A stretch of DNA of 64,000 bases. Source: Fimbriosthenelais zetlandica (lineage: Eukaryota). The position numbers were made by a program, and so were the translations under genes. Positions 4,062 to 63,300 of the stretch are shown here, one piece after another. The notes beneath the pieces are model-generated. The model did no database searches, had not been told where the DNA came from, and worked only from the letters and a program-made list of their open reading frames with translations. The stretch's first letter is position 1; each line of letters starts with the position of its first letter. The stretch lies in contig OZ365112.1 of NCBI GenBank assembly GCA_977030845.1, positions 18,662,001 to 18,726,000 of the forward strand. The letters run 5' to 3'.

Positions 4062-7000
4062 ATGGAGGATGATATGGACGATGTGGATGTTCGAGAAGCA
4101 GTATTTCACAACGTGGTTAGAGAATGCATCGTAAGTATAAGGCGCCGAGAGTTCATTGTTTATGTTGGTAGACCTTACTATAGTATAGGCATTTATAAGC
4201 CGATGGCATGGGTAGGGCAGAGTCTATTTATCCAGTTTATCTTTAAAAAATCCTGATCAAATTCTGGCTATTATCCACCTCGTGTCTCATAATTTAAATG
4301 AAGCCCAAATGTGTGATAGCCGTCACAGTTTAGTGTTGCATAAATGTATAATAATGTGTGACTGAGTGTGACCTATTCAATAATTTTGTGGTACCGTACC
4401 ATACTTAATTTACTAAGAAATATTTGTAAATTACTGTACTGTGTATAGATCTTATGCTCTAAATTATGGTGATGTGTCTGTGACATTGAATTTCCGTTTT
4501 TAAAGTGATGATTGGCATCATTTCGTGTACTACAGTCTACACAAATTCTGTAGACCTGTACTAGGCTGTAGTGTAGTGTATAAGGGGGGACCCTGGGCAT
4601 AGTAAAGAAAGTAGGTTATAGTCTGCTTAAATTTAGCTACATGGACTTAAGCCCAACATCACTGGGGGGTTAACAGACCGTGTATTAACAACAAAGGACC
4701 GTGTTTGGGAGAATCAGGCCGTCCAATACTGGTTAGCTAGAGATGGATGAGTGTTAGTTTCTAAATGAAAGTCATATAACGAAATTTGTAACTTTATATC
4801 TTTACTCCCTACTTCTCAGAAATAAGAAACCATGAATATTTTCACTTTCACGTTAATGATTGAATTAAGAGCTAACCAAGTCAATTACCTACATGTAGTA
4901 GGAAATAGGAGTGAATACACATTCCAGGTGTTTTTATTTTACCTCATTAGTGCGCCATGTTAAAACCAGCACAGCCACTTAATGGCCAGCTTTTTATCAG
5001 GTTCTAACCTCGAGTTGATCATTAGTACACGGTGCAAGGGAAGATGTTTTCCAAGTGGGTGTGTATGTTTTGATAGGAGGGACATTTTAGCAGTCGATAT
5101 GTCGAGCATGCCATGTTACTTTTAGGAGGCTGGGCAGCGTTCCAAAAAGACTGAAAAACACTCACAGACTTCTCCATCAGTCCCAGCTCATGTTAGTTTC
5201 TTACAACCACCTGACTCTACCACTCTTTACTCGCACCCTGTATTGATGTAAATAACACTAGTCTATTGTGCCACATGTTTTTGGCTTGAATCCAGGGGAA
5301 TGGATTCGCCCTAAAGGGAGAATGTCCCCTATCTTGAGTAATTCGGTTACAGATTTGATATAGGCTGAGTCAAATTGAAGTAGACTTCTTCAAGTTCATT
5401 ATTCAGGCTCTTGTAATTTGTCACCGCCCTTATAGCTTGTGCTGAAGTTCTTGCTTGGAGTGGATAGTGGAGGTTGAATGTGTGGCATAGCTACTTCTGC
5501 TCGGAGAAGGAGCCTGTCAGCATGACTGCTAAGTTTGTTATGCATTCACTTGCTCTGTTTGTTCTTGGACGACTCTATGTTAGATTGAGGAGGAAGGAAC
5601 TGGTACAGAGTGGCCCACTTTCATCCTGCTATGAATAGTTGGCATCTCTCTATCAGTGTTTGTTGAACAGTTCATAGTAGATCGTACGAATAAAATTGTT
5701 GATGAAAATGCGACTGATACTTGGTGACTTAAAAAGTATCGCTTACTGATAAAAGTAAAATAACACTGGAAAAATAAGTCCACGTGGCTTTCTCTGATTG
5801 TTAGTCTAGTTAGTAATTGCTCACGAGGTTTTTGGTTACATAGTCAGCATGACTTGCCTTGATATCAAATGGGGAAGTCTGGACCTGTATTTGCACGTAT
5901 TGACCTTTGGCACTTACCATGTCTTAGAAAAAATGGAGCTCACACCTGATTAGCTCAAATCATCTGGTACTCTATGACTCATAGTACGTCTGGTTTGATG
6001 GCACAGAAAGGAAGATTGATCCTATTCTGATGCATGAACATCTTCATCTGAATGGTGATATAAAAGAATTGATATCCACATGTATACATAATACTCCACA
6101 TGGGCTAACTGTTACTAAATAAAAATTTGAAACATCTTTTTCCTGCCCTGACATTTCAGATCTGGCTGCTCCTGTTTATGATGCTCTATGTCTGCTCGTA
6201 TGCCACAATTTGTGCTTTTAGGAGGAGAAAGGAACAAGAGGACTGCCTCTCGGGTAATATAGACCTGCCTTAAAACAACACCTTGATTATGATAAACATG
6301 TCCTTTTTAAATGCATTCTTTACAAGTCTAACGTTTTTTATGTTGTATGATGATCTCCAGACTGAATTCCTTGGAGAATTAAAATGATAGCCTCAAGAAA
6401 GTATTATGTATATCTTTCATGAAGACGAAATATAGATGTGTGAATTTGGTCGGATATGAAGTCATTTTCTCTTCTAATGTCATTGTATCTTTGATGTTTT
6501 CTAGCGGACACTGACGATGCATTCGTATATCGAATTTCGTGAGTATAAAACCTTTGCAATTTTATCTTGCCTATACTTAAATCAATTCTCAAAAGGGATT
6601 GGCAGTATTGAAGGAGCTATACGTTCATATTACTGATGTTTATGGGTATCCGTTGTTCTATAGCGGGTTCTTTTATCCCTTTCATATCCTTGAATAATGG
6701 TTTTTCTTTGTGGCAGGTTGTGGATATGTACGTTCACCCTGGCGGTGTCGGGTGGGGCCGTCCTTCTCCTTCCTATCTCCATCGTGGCCAATGAGTTGCT
6801 CGTCATGTCACCCAAATCATATTACCTGAAATGGGTCAACTCATCCCTCATCCATGGTCAGTGTTAAAGCGCTCCTTCCTCCTTCCTTCTTATTTCATTA
6901 TATTCTTTCCTATTTGTGGTATTTTCTTGTATTCAACTTGTAACACAGTACACATGTACTTCCTTTCTTCTTTGTGAATTGTCAACTTTCAATATCTTTG

Positions 7001-9952
7001 AATGTCTATCTCGAATGTCGGTTGTAATTCACAGCATGACAAATTATTATATGTAGCATCCTCCATTTTCCTATGTACATCATGTATGTTGATTTTAATT
7101 TGTTTCAAAATGCCGTGTCTCATGTCTCATTCTAGGGTTATGGAGTTTGATATTTCTCGCATCCAACCTGTGTCTCTTCATCCTGATGCCATTTGCATAT
7201 CTCTTCACAGAGTCTGAGGGATTCCCAGGATCCAAGAGGGTCTGTTTCCCTTCTCTCACCTTATGAATACCTTAATGAATGATCATGTCAATCACTTTTC
7301 TGTTAAAATTATATATTACATCTTTGCCTGCCATTTCACTGCTTTCCCATTCGGTTTTCTGATAAATTGATCTTGTAGATACACCAGTAATTGTCATTAT
7401 GTATCTATATATGAGGGGTATCTCTGTAGTTGGTATATTTGGCTTGTTACAGGGTATAATGCCCCGCGTGTATGAGACGGCTGTAGTCCTATTCCTCATC
7501 ACTATCACAGTGTGTGGCCTGGCCTGGGTCTTCTCTGCTATATTTGATGGTGATGCCTCCAGTAGACAGGTCTTCTTCGGTAAGCATGTCTTTTCACAAT
7601 CCTCTTCTTCCTCCTACATTCAGTTTCTAAGCCTAATCCCATGGAAAATGATCAGTGTTTTCTATGACATTGTGTTCAACTCTTCGTTTTTTATTCAGAT
7701 GTATGGAACCATCACCTACCTTACATATATTCGTGTATATCATTACTTGGTGTGCTGATGCTGCTAAGTAAGTATGCCTATCTTTGTCTTCATAACCTCA
7801 TCATCTGCTGCATAATATAAAACAATACTAAAGATAAACATGCATAGAATCTATGAATTTAACTTCAAATGAATTTAGTTAATTATAGTTTTTTATTTTA
7901 ATGTCAAATTTTGTACCTTTCAGTTTGTACACCAGTCGGCTTCGCTAGGTTATTCACTGTGATTGGGGAATTGGTTGTCAAACCTAAGGTAAGGAAAACG
8001 TAAATTTTTAATGTTGTATTTGTCCCAGTCTAATAAGACAAATTATGCTTGTTTTGCTCTGAACATTGCTCTAAAAGTCTAATGATTAAATGTAAAATAT
8101 CTCTTCGTTTTGCAGTTCTTAAGAGATATCAATGAGGAGCTATACTCGGTGTGGTTTGAAGAAGATGCCCTCCGGCGAAGAATACGCCGTTCCAACGGAC
8201 AGGGCAAACTGTCCAATGGTCACAGTAGCCTTACAGAATTACAAAAGAAGCTTAGTGAAATTCAACATGATAGACAAGAATTAGGTGCGTCCAATTTTTA
8301 TACCTTCTCACTTCAATATTTTTACTCACCTGTTCATAATCTCACATAAAATGTATGGTCTTTTATGTTATGAATAATCGTGAGTTTTAATATCTAATTT
8401 ACAGAAAAAAGACGCCAAATATCTTCTTTGCGAAGAAACCTAGGCTACCCTTTAGTAATGCTACTCGTCTTAGCATTAACAGTAAGTACTTAGAACTATT
8501 CTTTATCATTGTATGGTTCGTTCTTAGAGGAGATTAACTGTCGATATTTCAGCCCAAAGTTCTCAGTCAAACAAAGTCAGCTGTTTGCGGTTAAAGCATG
8601 TGTAAGGTATAGAGAGATGTGGCAATCTGTCATGTGGTAAGACTGGTAGAGTGACTTATATATAGAAGGATTCCCGGTGTGCTGTGGACCATATCGGGTA
8701 TGCCCATGTAAACAAGGTCAAGCTTGTATAATCACGCTTCTTTTTGATCTTGATCAAATTTTAACACAGCATCTTTATCACAGAATCAGTTTTGGTTTTC
8801 TATGTTAATTTAAATAAACCCACAGAAATGGATCACATATTCATTATTTAGCAGACATGTATGCCACATACCTAGCATCATAGTTTACTTGTGAATTGAT
8901 GGCTGTTAATTTTTCATTAACATGAATCTTGCTTTGCTTGCCTTTCCCCAGGCCATCTCTGTGCTGATGGTTCTACAAAACAGTTTCGCTTTATTGATAG
9001 GAATAAAAGCTCTACCCAAAGGGGCCAAGGTAAGACAAAACTCAGGCATTTACACGAGAAAAGAAACCGTGTTGGACTACATGATACATCTGCAATCTTT
9101 AATTGGAATGAAGACACTTATACCAAGAATTAACTCAGTCTAATGTCTAAAATCTAATGTCCATGTATGTTTCAGGAGATCGTTCTAGGGATATCTTCTC
9201 TCTCTGCTCTGGGACCGCTAGGAGCTGGTCTTGAAGTGACACTCATATTGTATCCTTAACAAAAGTATCAGTTCTCAATACCTGAGGTATAAATACTCCT
9301 TGATGATGCTGTTGGTATTGACAGCTGTTTCAAAATAGAGTGCCTTTTTGGAGGACATAAAAAGGATAGTAGGAAAAACATTATATATGATGTGTTCTCA
9401 GTAAGGAGTTATCAGCCTTGACTGTCTCTCAGCTATCTAATGTTAGCCTCAGTGGTAGGATTCTTCTCTCTACCGTTTTTCAGCCGTCTTACGCCTGTAC
9501 TACATGACACGCCCATGACGACCATTATCGCCATTGGAGCAGTCATTCTCATCATGAGTAGTGCCCTGCCTGTTTTGTCCAGAACTCTGGGTAAATTGTT
9601 TATTTATTTATCTTATGAATTTATATTAATCATGACATAATTGCCTGGAGTTATTTCCCATATCTAACGTTAGACTGAGCACATTGTCTTTACCTGTTTG
9701 CATCTTGCTTTAGGAATCACCAATTTTGACCTGCTGGGTAACTTTGGTAGCATGGAGTGGCTGGGAAACTTCTACATCATTCTCTTCTACAACATCGTCT
9801 TTACCGTGGCTACCACCATCAGCCTCGTTACCAAATTCACATCAACCATGCGCAACGAAATCTACAACAGATTTGAGGCGTTCTTCCGCCGTGAGAGGCG
9901 ACATACTTCATTCTCCGCCAACGGAAGCAACTTACATATCAAGGACGAGTGA
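4062..9952 (+). CDS. LMBR1: Limb region 1 (LMBR1/LMBR1L-family) multi-pass membrane protein, 498 aa
   Basis: Exons 4062-4130, 6160-6253, 6505-6538, 6717-6856, 7136-7239, 7453-7579, 7699-7767, 7924-7988, 8116-8284, 8405-8481, 8952-9029, 9176-9249, 9433-9590, 9714-9952 (1497 nt, phases consistent). Peptides TFTLAVSGGAVLLLPISIVANE, LMPFAYLFTESEGF, CTPVGFARLFTV, SSALPVLSRTLGITNFDLLGNFG and WLGNFYIILFYN match the LMBR1 family. Confidence 0.96.
9250..9432 (+). other. U12-type (minor spliceosome) GT-AG intron in LMBR1
   Basis: 5' splice site GTATCCTTAAC; branch sequence CCTTGAC at 9416-9422, 8 nt before the AG at 9431-9432; splicing restores TT|C TAT CTA ATG (F-Y-L-M). Confidence 0.88.
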
Positions 9953-54900: not shown

Positions 54901-57900
54901 TATTTACATAAAATATTTTCTAAACATCATGATATGCAAAGACAATTGAGGCTAGCACAAAAAGGTAATAATGAGAAGACTTACCTGCCATGGTAAGGGG
55001 GGCACCACCACCAGATCCATATGTAGATAAGAGGGATTCTGTGATCTCCCCGCGATAAGGCAGGGGATTGCAGTGACGATCAATCGTATATCCTGATAAA
55101 CCAACATTTTATTAATTATTACAACAATCATGACAGAAGCGTAACATTAACAATGTAATTTATAGGGGACCAATGTGTGTAGCTTCCCTCAGAATGATAA
55201 TCATTAGCCTCACCTTGGAGGACATAGAGTATGACTCGGGTTGCCACCTCCTGTACCTGCTCATCTGTAACGGTATTACTCTCTATGCCTGCTTCTCTCA
55301 GTAAAGTGTATGCATCAAAACACTGAAACAGATACACCATTGTTTAGATCCTGTATGTCAGGTTTATTCATCAGTGAGGGACAACCTTCCGGCCTGTTGA
55401 ATGTGATGACTATAAAATATGACATGACCTAAAGGTGTCTGCATGTCCTGAATAGCCGGGAGGGCAGGAAACCTATGGGAAAACTCCAGTATGTATTAAC
55501 TAGTTGAATCTGGTCCAATAATTCACGTGGGACAGCTCTAAATGTTAAAGTAAAATTCTAATCCCCAAGAAGAAATAATGTTCCAATATGTTAGGATCGT
55601 TAAGACCCTTTACATGTACCGGTTCAGTGATTGGGTACACCATAATATTACTTTGTATCAAAGGATCATGTAATCGTGATCTGGGGCGGTCGGTGAATAA
55701 ATCAATTGAAACTCATTACAACTGCCGCTGATGAAAGTCAGGGAAATATCAGGGGTACATCCAAGGCCGATACGTTCTCATTAATTACAACGATCCTTCT
55801 ATTTACAAATGAATTAGAACGAAACAATAGAATATATTCATGCCATCAATACAAAAATTCCATCAAGTTAGCTCAATCTAAAAAACAATTTGGGATAAAA
55901 TAAGTCTATATAAGCCTAATAGCTTATTGAATGACATGGCATTGATAGCGTAGTATGCATGTTCAAGGTAATAACATTGAATCTGTGTTACCTCATCATT
56001 CGTATTTTCTTCCTCAGAATGGTCGTGTCCTTCGTATGTATGCTCATCTTCGTGCGTCTCACTATGAGTATCCTCATGAGAATCCTCATTGGAATTATCG
56101 ATCTTAAGATCATTTAAAATCCCCTGCAATCTTTCTCTGAAACTTAATATTTTTTTAGTTGGAACTTCTTCACTGTGAGAGTGCCCTTGCTCTTTTGAAT
56201 GTCCACTATGAGAATGCCCTTTATGATAATCCCCATCTTCATGGTGATCCTCGTCCTCAGAATGGGATTCCCCTTTATGGTCATCCCCTTCTTCATGGTG
56301 ATCCTCGTCCTCAGAATGGGATTCCCCTTTATGGTCATCACCTTCTTCATGGTGATCCTCGTCCTCAGAATGGGATTCCCCTTTATGGTCATCCCCTTCT
56401 TCATGGTGATCCTCGTCCTCAGAATGGGATTTCCTTTCATAATCAGGGGGGTGGCCTTCCTTGGAATGGGAATCCCTGACACCCCTCTCATGTGAATTCC
56501 CTTCGTCTGAATGGCTGTCCTCTGGGATGACATCACCCTCATTGTCATCCAATCTCAGCCAATTAGTGAAGTTACTCAAAGTATAGTCAGTAAATTTCGT
56601 GGAACAGGCCTCCCTGACATCATGGATGTAGAAGAGCAGGACAGGGGCAGCTCTCTTCAGGTCAGTCTTATTTAGCCCTAGATCAGGATCAGCTCCCAGC
56701 AAGCTGAAGAGTGTATTCACACTAAGGCACTGAAAGAGAAATCAAATTGTTGAACAGGTTACATTATATGCTCATTTCTATTTATGAACATTAGGCTACA
56801 TTAGCTATTTCTGCTGAGAAAAAGTTCCAGGGTTCTACATCGAGTTTCCAGTTTTCTTACATATGGTTCAAAAAGAGCTTCATAATAGACATTGTGCTTT
56901 CAAACATCAAGAACACGGATGTAGAATACATTTGTAAGGATTATTTGTACCAGTGGGAGTGAAATAATGTTTTTTAAAACTGTAAGATGAAAGCTACGCT
57001 CAAATATTCATCACACCCAGGCGGCTGAGTCTATAGACACTGCCCACTCCAAAGGTGGGGCTCAAGATTCTCTATTTGCAAGTCATGATCTACTTCTGAT
57101 CTAAATATACATCCTGGTAGAGAAGAACAGGTTAGATTATATCACCTTGAGGAAATCCCACTTTCATGATTGTACAATGATTCACAGTCCTTGGATATTG
57201 ACTTAACAAGTAATACTGCCCAATTTTACCTTCATACAATATATATTTCAACAGTGTCAGTAAAATTCCTAAAATGTGAATATTCTAGTTTGTTTCATTA
57301 TTGAGGGCTGAGAGATTAATCCTTTGATGACATCATCCTGTCATGTACAGAAAAGCTGCGTTCAAGTGAGAAGTGTTATTTTTAAAATATCATATGAAAC
57401 TTCAAGACAGAATTGTAAAACATGAAAATGTTCATTGTCTGCTGAGTTTATGGAAAGGACTGCGTTCATGTGGAATACATTACGTGTAAAACTTACTTTT
57501 AAAGATTTTTAAAACACAGTACTTTAAGTCACATTGCACATAGGATAAGAAAAGGAGAAGCTGGTATTCTTTATCTTCATCTTGGCGTGAGACTCAAATG
57601 ATTAATTCATGTATGAAACAGTCACAGCCTCTTATTTCTTTGTATAAGGTCCATCATAGAATTCCAGGAGGGACAGGTAGGCTATTCATAGCAGCAGATC
57701 CTGTCTACACATTACTTACATTACATTCCCACACAACAGATTTACTACGCATTGTCCCCATGAAGTATATTAAACTCCTTCCTACATTAAAAATACATAT
57801 ATATCTTAACTAGTAGAGCTTTGGGACCGAATTACAGCCTATTTAATTACAGCCTAGACCTTTGGTAAAATATTCGACAAGTAGATAACCAACCACTGAC

Positions 57901-60317: not shown

Positions 60318-63300
60318 TTAAACTGCTTCCTCCTCCTCCTCTTCCTCCTCGTCAGACTCTGTAAATGCAAGTAATTTCATTAGATATTCAGTTGACATGC
60401 AGAATGTTGCTCATGCTTCTTTTTCTACTTCGTTCTATCCAAGCTCCGAAAGGCGGATATCATCAAACGATTTCTTCTTGATACTAGCTGAAGTCATGAC
60501 TTTGTGTTACAATGTTTTAAGCACCAGCAGACTGAAGATGTCTTGACTAAAGGCTGGCCTAATTAGATCTCAATTTAGGGTTATTGATAATTGAAGGACT
60601 TTAGTCCAGAGAAGTGTAATTGGTCAGATATTTTTGTGAATTCTAAACTATATTGACGATTGTAGTTGTTCCTGGTACGATTTGTCGGCGGCAGGTTTTT
60701 CATGTCCGTTCTTTCAAAGGTGCGAGTCTCTCAATAATATGTGATGTGCTTTCATCGACTCATTATTCATTCATTAAAGAAAATTACCTCAATTTATAGT
60801 TTAGTATCCAAAGTATCAACTAACCTTCTTCCTCTGCATTCTGGAGCCATTCGACAAACTTGCGAGTCTGGTCAAGGAAGACGCTCTTGCCCTTAGCGCT
60901 GTGGGCGCCACGGTGCCACTTGAGGATTGTATCCTCGCTCAGCACGTCAGCTGTAAAGATGAAATAGATCACATTATAATCATTATACCAAATCATGGTC
61001 TATAAGTTTATAATATATACACCATCTATTAGATAATTCATCTTCAGACTCATTAGATCATTTTTGCTTTCATAAAAATCAAGCAAAATAGGGATATCGT
61101 CACAGGAATCGGGCAATTATCGTAAACAGATATAATATTCATACATCATCTTCACAAATAAATGTGCACCTTTTCTTTAAAAATTACAATTTTGCTTCTT
61201 GATTTCCTCAGACTCATTAGATCATTTTTGCTTTCATAAAAATCAAGCAAAATAGGGATATCGTCACAGGAATCGAGCAATTACAGTAAACAGATATATT
61301 TTTCTTAAAAAACATGTGTATGTTTGCTTTCCTCAGACTCATTAGATCATTTTTGCTTTCATCAAATTCAAGCAAAATTAAGGATATCGTCATAGGAAGG
61401 ATGTAATCAGACCTGTACAATAAATATTATACATTCTTGATGAATACTTTAACTTGCGTAGGTTACATGCTATTTAAAAAGATTTCCTCAGACTCATTAG
61501 ATCAGATTATGCTATCATCAGAATCAAGCAAAAAATTAACATCTTCACAGGAAAAATGCATTTAAATCAGGTACACTGAAGCATAACTAGGATATATGCA
61601 TAGAACATGACTGCGTTTCAAGACCCTCAGACTCATTAGATCAAGTTAGCTATCAGTACATATCAAGCTGAGATGATATCATCAGTGGGTCGAACTTCAG
61701 ACAGGTATTGTTTGGGTAAACAGGTTTCAATGTTTGTCAACGAACAATATCATTTGAAAGCAATATCAAGTAATTCTGAAAACATACCTTTGTACAAAAG
61801 CACTACTATCTTTTGGAACACCTTGAGAAAGTTCTGGTTCTCGTAGCAGAATTCCTGAATCTTCAGGAGAAGAGAAAGTTCGGACTTCTCTGTCTGGGTG
61901 AGAGCAGCCAGCACCTGAGCGTGGGATTTGAGATGTTTCAGAGCTTGTTCAGCCACCAGCTCCTCTTTCTTGTTCCATTCAACTGACGCCATAAGAGTTT
62001 GCCAAGCCTGCAGGATACAAAACAGTTAATCAGTTTTTTTTCGTCGAAAGTAACGGTTGAAGACATTTAACTGAGTATTCATTTCATCAGATTAGATCAG
62101 TTATAGGGGTTTATCCTCACAGATAATAAGACTGGGTATATCATCATATGAAATGATCTTAAATTAAATGTCCACAAAACCAAATTAGCAAAAGGTTACA
62201 TAGAATTATTAATCAACCAATTAATAGACCCGATTTTAAGCAAAGTTAATAACCTTTGAGTAGGGATATCAGCTATCAGCTTAACTCACCATAACTACGA
62301 CTTCGTGCTCGCTTATCTGATTCTTCTTCATGCTCTCCTTGATATGAGCAATGATTTCCTTCACTGGTTCCTCGTTACGCATCATTTCCTCCATCTGTTT
62401 GTGGAGCTCCTTCTTTACTTCCATGGTTGCTTTAGCACGCTGAAAGATCAAGTTAACAGTGAAATTAAAGCTGGCATATTTCAGATGACTTACAATACTC
62501 AAAACCATGAATTACTTTTATCATTTTATCAGACATTAAGAATAAAGATTGCTTGCATTGGCAGACATATTAAGAATAAAGATTGCTTGCATTGGAACGC
62601 AAAGGAACTTACTTGATAATCGCATATTTGACTCAGGCCTGCCCCCTGAAAGTGATTCTGAAAGTTGGCTAGCGTCCGTTTGTTGATGGGCAACAAATTC
62701 TGTAAGAAAAATTACAGGAAATATTAATATATTTCTAATGGTCTAGACATAAAATATCAGTTGGTTGATTATTAGAATGAATAACGTAATTTAATGCCAA
62801 TACATTACGTCCTAAGTAAAGTAATTTATGCAAATTAATCTTTTAAATATAGGGAACTCTTCCCTGCTATGCAATACAGATCGATATATCTACTCTGCAA
62901 ATTTATCCATATAAAGCACGTACCATTAATTTCCCCTCCAGCCCAGCACGTTTTAAAGTACTGGCTATGTTGCTTAGGTCTTTCTCCACCAACCATGCCT
63001 TAAACAGATCGGTAGCAAAGCTCAGGGCTATTCCTGCAAGAACAAATCATGCACACACCATGCGTTATTACGGCGGGTAAATTAATCAGATCTACCAACG
63101 ACATCAACTCACTGAGGGATACTCAACAAAGCAACCTCCAATTCCACCTCTGGTTAGAGGAATTGAATACAGAATACAGTATTACACCCATTACAACTTG
63201 ATAACTTACTAATTTTAGTATGTTGGAGTGGGAGGAAAAAGTACACTATAACTATGGTCGGTGTAGGGAGCCGGAAGCAAGTAGAGGAACCCCATGAAAT

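Follow-up and report, generated by a model that had tools for sequence, protein, structure and literature searches.

A Five-Copy Array of Probable SNORD57-Like Box C/D snoRNA Genes in a BZW Intron of a Marine Invertebrate

An Array of Five U57-Like Units in BZW Intron 10

The stretch of DNA analyzed here (the window) comprises 64,000 nucleotides (nt) of contig OZ365112.1 from the marine invertebrate Fimbriosthenelais zetlandica, and carries on its minus strand a BZW gene of about 12 coding exons that extends past the window end. Within one intron of this gene lie five tandem units that resemble U57, the small nucleolar RNA (snoRNA) of the SNORD57 family; they are labeled A to E here. The exons on both sides of the intron match the W2 domain and a further upstream exon matches Pfam HEAT_5MP1_2; the host is therefore a BZW/5MP (eIF5-mimic) orthologue. 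The intron, with its GT at 61787 and its AG at 60951, joins the two W2-domain exons in frame, and the downstream exon ends either at a splice site at 60825/60824 or at a stop at 60820. The features are listed below in the direction of transcription. Unit boundaries were taken from Rfam matches, and scores refer to the Rfam SNORD57 model (RF00274) and to R1, a covariance model built from 12 homologues.

61788..62007, minus strand: BZW exon 10, which precedes the snoRNA intron and in which the W2 domain starts; identified by translation and Pfam W2, 82-100% amino acid (aa) identity to relatives
60951..61787, minus strand: BZW intron 10, 837 nt, GT..AG, phase 1, GTATGT...TTTACAG; contains all five units
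61624..61690, minus strand: unit E, intron nt 98-164, first transcribed; C box CUGAUGA, D box at 61630-61627, stem GACCC/GGGUC; SNORD57 25.7 bits, R1 77.5 bits
61485..61553, minus strand: unit D, intron nt 235-303; C box GUGAAGA, C' box UGAUGA, stem UUUCC/GGAAA, outer 7-bp stem AUUUAAA/UUUAAAU; SNORD57 33.1 bits, R1 76.0 bits
61330..61398, minus strand: unit C, intron nt 390-458; C box AUGACGA, stem UUCC/GGAA; SNORD57 31.2 bits, R1 81.2 bits
61205..61272, minus strand: unit B, intron nt 516-583; C box GUGACGA, terminal stem extended to about 12 bp with bulges; SNORD57 33.3 bits, R1 83.7 bits
61041..61108, minus strand: unit A, intron nt 680-747, last transcribed, 90 nt before the 3' splice site; C box GUGACGA; SNORD57 28.9 bits, R1 75.8 bits
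60825..60950, minus strand: BZW exon 11, which follows the snoRNA intron and belongs to the W2 domain; Pfam W2 E 5.8e-14, tblastn to relatives

The original prediction, made from the letters of the window, had placed five units of about 70 nt in intron 60951-61787. This holds for their number and location (67-69 nt each, within 61041-61690, separated by spacers of 57-96 nt), but the orientation had to be corrected: the RNAs are encoded on the minus strand, and their order in the transcript is E, D, C, B, A. An intronic snoRNA cluster consists of at least two sense-strand snoRNAs in one spliceosomal intron, and five are present here. The 17-mer TGATCTAATGAGTCTGA has five exact matches in the 64-kb window, all on the minus strand (at 61044, 61208, 61333, 61488, and 61627), compared with a mean of 0.02 in the shuffled window, where five or more matches occurred in 0 of 100 shuffles. 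A pattern search of the 447-Mb genome found zero further exact copies. Tandem Repeats Finder did not detect the array in the window because the spacers are too unlike one another.

Boxes, Stems, and Family Assignment

All five copies carry the guide UGAUCUAAUGAGU followed by an invariant CUGA (D box), as well as a C box of the form UGAnGA, in agreement with the invariant guide-CTGA and C-like box first noticed in the DNA. An internal element, GCUUGA...UGA(A/U)AGC, is retained in every copy; we read it as a putative D'/C' kink-loop that, as modeled, would be closed by a 4-6 bp stem (UUGCU/AGCAA). In the folds, terminal stems of 4-5 bp adjoin the boxes in B to E, the number of units for which a clear stem had been proposed, and are extended in B and D. 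In copy A, a G>A directly after the D box (CUGA-A vs CUGA-G) breaks the adjacent stem; an alternative 7-bp external stem, GAUAAUU/AAUUAUC, is available to this copy, whose body is identical to that of B. The terminal stem of a box C/D snoRNA is thus found in all five units, next to the boxes in B to E and via the external stem in A.

We considered the sequence at D' as a second guide and rejected it, as it is unconserved among copies, is partly locked in the internal stem, and has no convincing match in ribosomal RNA (rRNA; 9-12 bp, many of them G-U). Since the internal stem ties up the D'-proximal sequence and the remaining D' antisense is short and unconserved, the units are best described as single-guide snoRNAs, like SNORD57.

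At the gathering cut-off, Rfam yields no match in the window. In a permissive scan of the 951 nt searched, SNORD57 is the best family for each of the five units (25.7-33.3 bits, E 6e-5 to 8e-3) and other C/D families score far lower on them, so that the proposed likeness to SNORD57 stands, although at scores below the gathering level. The units share with human U57 the box C/D type, a length of about 70 nt, a single D guide with the core GAU(C/U)UAAUGAG(U/C)-CUGA, and a target, A99, at D+5. They differ from it in lying in BZW rather than NOP56, in forming five tandem copies in one intron, in having C at D+9, and in their variant C boxes (UGACGA, UGAAGA) and D' box (UUGA).

A Predicted Target in 18S rRNA

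Pairing was evaluated on the 18S rRNA of this genome's own ribosomal DNA (rDNA), which was confirmed by Rfam (18S at positions 67-1969 of rDNA locus L026, plus 5.8S and 28S). Its nt 94-108 read GGCUCAUUAGAUCAG, and the guide UGAUCUAAUGAGU forms 13 pairs with nt 95-107 (12 Watson-Crick and one G-U), placing A99 opposite D+5. The antisense element accordingly exceeds 10 nt directly upstream of the D box and has its target at the fifth pair. The 18S 95-107 site is the top rRNA match for copies A to D, and for copy E is tied with a site around A209. We predict from this complementarity that the array should guide 2'-O-methylation of 18S A99. The claim that the D+5 base pairs with the same A as in SNORD57 was borne out on the organism's own 18S; human SNORD57 is assigned to 18S:A99 and hosted by NOP56 (PMC10835520; PMC7962485).

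Compared with the Rfam consensus (GAUUUAAUGAGC), the guide differs internally at one base only, C at D+9. Its partner is G103, a base specific to this lineage; in human the corresponding pair is U with A. The guide has therefore tracked the lineage-specific 18S substitution A103G. The single copy found in a more distant assembly (L032, below) has the canonical U at D+9. This match of 18S A103G by U>C in the guide is a clean case of guide-target co-evolution. In yeast, snR51, which is independently transcribed and carries two guides, directs methylation at 18S Am100, the homologous position. By analogy, this suggests that modification of 18S A99 may be ancient.

Two further observations concern the rRNA. 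The A209 site is a second complement of the guide, lying in 18S UUAUUAGAUCAAG (nt 205-220 of the 18S at L026) with A209 at D+5. It forms 12 pairs (two of them G-U) with copies A to D and 14 with copy E, in which the duplex is lengthened by D+14 and D+15. The A103G change made the A99 and A209 sites share AUUAGAUCA. In addition, the spacer of the 20.5-kb rDNA unit contains two 5S rRNA genes (L026:7718-7836 and 8749-8867), encoded in the same orientation as 18S, 5.8S, and 28S.

BZW as Host in Other Invertebrates

Comparison with the orthologous BZW intron of related species, which had been suggested as a check, was carried out by searching a 90%-clustered protein set with the exon 10 open reading frame (ORF) and then inspecting the contigs of the relatives; a 50%-clustered set yielded nothing but BZW relatives with at most 72% identity. 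Three assemblies contain U57-like units:

L027 (ENA ERZ25767047): exon 10 with 80% nt and 82% aa identity to the window; five U57-like units at 6499-6567, 6886-6954, 7200-7268, 7531-7599, and 7989-8057, between exon 10 (5986-6204) and exon 11 (from 8330)
L028 (Logan ERR14368249): exon 10 with 89% nt and 100% aa identity; at least one unit, at about nt 90 of the same intron, after which the contig ends
L032 (ENA ERZ25069296): exon 10 with 70% nt identity; one unit, with the canonical guide GGAUUUAAUGAGC-CUGA, in BZW intron 5

No U57-like unit was seen in the available parts of the more distant BZW loci L030 and L031 (TARA) and L033 and L034 (other ENA assemblies). Together with the window, U57-like genes are thus found in BZW introns of four invertebrate assemblies. 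BZW hosting of U57 is common to several invertebrates, and the multi-copy array in intron 10 is common to at least two species. The proposal that BZW is a non-vertebrate host of this family therefore gains support from these assemblies. Outside vertebrates, U57-type guides sit in BZW, not NOP56.

Within the genome, the array stands alone. The pattern search, the Rfam model, and R1, each applied genome-wide, return only the same five genes; the array is therefore the genome's only source of an A99 guide. With R1, the five units score 75.8-83.7 bits and the next match, at 31 bits, is a neighboring snoRNA of another specificity (G103, below). An abundant genome-wide repeat, which would have spoken against snoRNA genes, was looked for and ruled out, given five copies only in 447 Mb. 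The vertebrate location in a NOP56 intron is likewise not seen, as all copies lie in BZW intron 10 and none elsewhere in the genome.

Several candidates were discarded along the way. Three one-mismatch matches to the 17-mer elsewhere in the genome (L006-L008) are without C boxes or stems and are attributed to chance, and an Rfam match on contig C25 (29 bits) is without a D box. A further 44 metagenome loci match the 17-mer by chance; all score 31 bits or less with R1, compared with at least 59 for true copies, and the best of them is without a C box.

Selection and Copy History

Alignment of the intron between species by blastn is confined to the five snoRNA bodies. Within one species the bodies are 72-99% identical, and most 50-nt flanks are near the shuffled level. 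Across a 12-sequence alignment (A3), the terminal and internal (C'/D') stems are paired in 89% of cells and compensatory changes on both sides occur in seven of the 11 stem pairs (e.g., UUCC/GGAA, UCCC/GGGA, ACCC/GGGU, GCUU/AAGC), including four of the five pairs of the terminal stem. None of 500 shuffles reaches this covariation, and slid controls are 28-64% paired. Selection on the units, which had been suspected from the window by itself, is thus supported by the alignment of snoRNA bodies only and by the covarying stems.

Also as initially described, A and B are nearly identical (67 of 68 positions), E is the most divergent copy (72-75% identity), and the spacers have diverged; copy C is 91-93% identical to A and B. 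In L027, copies 2-5 are 86-93% alike in the non-guide body. This pattern fits repeated local duplication or homogenisation per lineage, that is, birth and death inside a conserved array. The occurrence of five copies in both species may reflect chance or dosage selection, which two species do not distinguish.

Interpretation and Alternative Readings

We consider it probable (roughly 0.78) that the five units are working box C/D snoRNA genes that arose by tandem duplication, correspond in invertebrates to SNORD57, and are transcribed within BZW intron 10. In the mechanism that we favor, the units would be co-transcribed with the BZW pre-mRNA and small nucleolar ribonucleoproteins (snoRNPs) would assemble on each kink-turn. 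Every unit would form a C/D kink-turn, with a terminal or external stem closing it, and an internal C'/D' kink-loop, and only the D guide would be in use. The 13-nt guide would pair with 18S 95-107, and fibrillarin would 2'-O-methylate A99. Copies other than A are far from the branch point, and their terminal or external stems would probably assist snoRNP assembly. Once the intron is spliced out and debranched, exonucleases of both polarities (5'-3' and 3'-5') would be halted at E and A. Since exonucleases stop at the first and last snoRNP, separate inner monomers would need endonucleolytic cuts, which may fall in the AU-rich spacers and be followed by trimming to free the inner copies. Over longer times the array would turn over by local duplication, with A to D young and E old or fast-evolving, while purifying selection would keep boxes, stems, and guide. 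The route of release (endonuclease, a snoRNA-ended long non-coding RNA, or maturation of only some copies) is something that we infer from this arrangement.

A number of observations weigh against this interpretation. Four of the five C boxes deviate from RUGAUGA at position 5 (C or A for U), and copy E, the sole one with U there, carries C instead of R at position 1. In copy A, two of the four box-adjacent stem pairs are lost. No unit reaches the SNORD57 gathering score of 47 bits; the canonical-guide copy of L032 likewise scores low (25.4 bits), and the RF00274 model is therefore narrow. In a tree of the copies only the window A-D group stands out (89/96 support) and the remainder is poorly resolved. 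No endonuclease signal was recognised in the spacers. Finally, one marine metatranscriptome mapped to the region gave only exon pieces of a relative and the splice joint 63788/63954, leaving the snoRNA intron uncovered.

The alternative that survives best supposes that only some units work, and that at least one of them, likeliest A or the copies with variant C boxes, is a young pseudogene that has not yet decayed. The variation at C-box position 5 would fit this, as would the difference between A and B, a G>A that opens the stem beside the D box; moreover, the A/B duplication is very recent, which leaves little time for selection to act. On the other side, the UGACGA C box is common to most copies of both species (window and L027) and is therefore a maintained variant rather than decay, and copy A retains its external stem and a position 90 nt from the 3' splice site. 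We regard partial decay of the array as possible but doubtful.

We consider it unlikely that the array is not cut to monomers at all, and instead gives rise to a snoRNA-ended RNA of about 650 nt (a sno-lncRNA) with up to five snoRNPs, or that maturation is limited to the outer copies, E and A. Mammalian introns with two snoRNAs yield sno-lncRNAs by exactly such an exonuclease route (PMC11028025), and no signal for cleavage was recognised in the spacers. However, the inner copies B, C, and D keep boxes, stems, and guide intact, and conservation is highest in the inner copies of L027 (86-93% in the non-guide body), as expected if each unit is under selection as a functional guide. Polycistronic precursors, moreover, are resolved in plants and yeast.

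That each unit is transcribed from its own upstream intronic promoter, independently of BZW, is very improbable: the upstream flanks of A and B agree over about 25 nt, but no upstream motif is common to all five units or shared with L027, and all copies in the four assemblies lie on the host sense strand, as is typical of intron-processed snoRNAs. It is scarcely credible that the repeat is an intronic satellite or a mobile-element fragment resembling C/D boxes by chance, since, for all that every Rfam match falls under the gathering score, the unit occurs nowhere else in the genome, is kept in the corresponding intron of other species, unlike the spacers, has two covarying stems, and complements the organism's own 18S at a known methylation site.

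One feature of the intron concerns splicing itself. In the spacer between units D and C (window 61411-61415, minus strand), the sequence uauuuauuguacag|gucuga resembles a recursive splice site, with a pyrimidine-rich tract and AG|GU. If used, this putative site would divide the intron into a two-unit and a three-unit part.

Comparison With Other Intronic Arrays

The original prediction had contrasted the array with the one-snoRNA-per-intron arrangement. This arrangement is indeed predominant in animals (PMC11028025); nevertheless the contrast is less striking than proposed, because intronic snoRNA clusters have been described in rice and Drosophila (Liang 2002; Huang 2004, 2005, as cited in PMC2780460 and PMC5932544) and because Drosophila kra, the BZW orthologue, has intronic snoRNAs (PMC9074282). 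According to the citing papers, the rice and Drosophila clusters are like the present array in that several sense-strand snoRNAs lie in one spliceosomal intron, often as paralogous isoforms from local duplication. The array differs from them in belonging to a marine invertebrate and a C/D family and in occurring with the same five copies in a second species.

With sno-lncRNAs the array, known here from genomic sequence, shares the genomic precondition of more than one snoRNA in one intron (PMC11028025), such that trimming by exonucleases alone would spare everything between the outermost snoRNPs. The known cases differ in that two snoRNAs flank a long non-snoRNA insert, whereas here five units lie 57-96 nt apart.

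The array is a solid addition to an established family, arranged in a way that is uncommon but already known, and does not overturn current understanding. It adds to the annotation of an uncharacterised marine invertebrate a well-supported snoRNA family with its rRNA target, and as a multi-copy intronic array kept across species it documents array turnover. With the other arrays of the genome, it offers a natural system for studying how several snoRNAs are processed from one animal intron.

Further snoRNA Arrays and Neighboring Features

A different C/D snoRNA is encoded twice on the minus strand, in BZW intron 9 (window positions 62078-62158) and in BZW intron 3 (L015:6423-6503, equivalent to 64423-64503, shortly beyond the end of the window). 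Its guide, AUAACUGAUCUAAU-CUGA, places 18S G103 at D+5. R1 aligns this G103-type snoRNA at 30-31 bits with a single 4-nt gap (GAGU) directly before the D box, and its similarity to the U57-like units outside boxes and guide is weak. Judging from this alignment, the G103-type snoRNA could descend from a U57-like copy whose target was moved from A99 to G103 by the 4-nt gap, although homology is unproven.

The relative's BZW intron 9 (L027:1838-5510, within a single 4.6-kb intron) carries three SNORA74-like H/ACA units (41.8-48.8 bits) and at least four G103-type C/D units, and is a mixed intronic polycistron of H/ACA and C/D units. In the RACK1 region of the present genome (G000:C13, about 5.819-5.822 Mb), tandem arrays of 4 x 64 nt and 5 x 71 nt occur at L035:2225-3025 and 4116-5106. 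Their units are spaced 138-465 nt apart and are barely recognised by Rfam; these repeats look like further multi-copy snoRNA arrays of the same genome.

We offer only as a tentative suggestion, and one that may well prove wrong, that the one-snoRNA-per-intron rule has been broadly given up in this lineage, with tandem paralogous arrays in single introns of translation-related genes, among which would be BZW intron 10 here and in L027, BZW intron 9 of L027, and the repeat arrays of the RACK1 region, and that new guide specificities may arise within such arrays. Conservation of the arrays, if real, would mean that animals have an unrecognised pathway for resolving intronic polycistrons, or that multi-snoRNP RNAs are functional.

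Downstream of BZW, the sole long ORF in the window (55878-56720, minus strand) encodes 280 aa and is His/Glu/Asp-rich, with repeated units. Elsewhere in the assembly, contig C79 (15,667 bp) is the mitochondrial genome; its COX1 contains 10 in-frame TGA codons, and TGA is therefore read as Trp.

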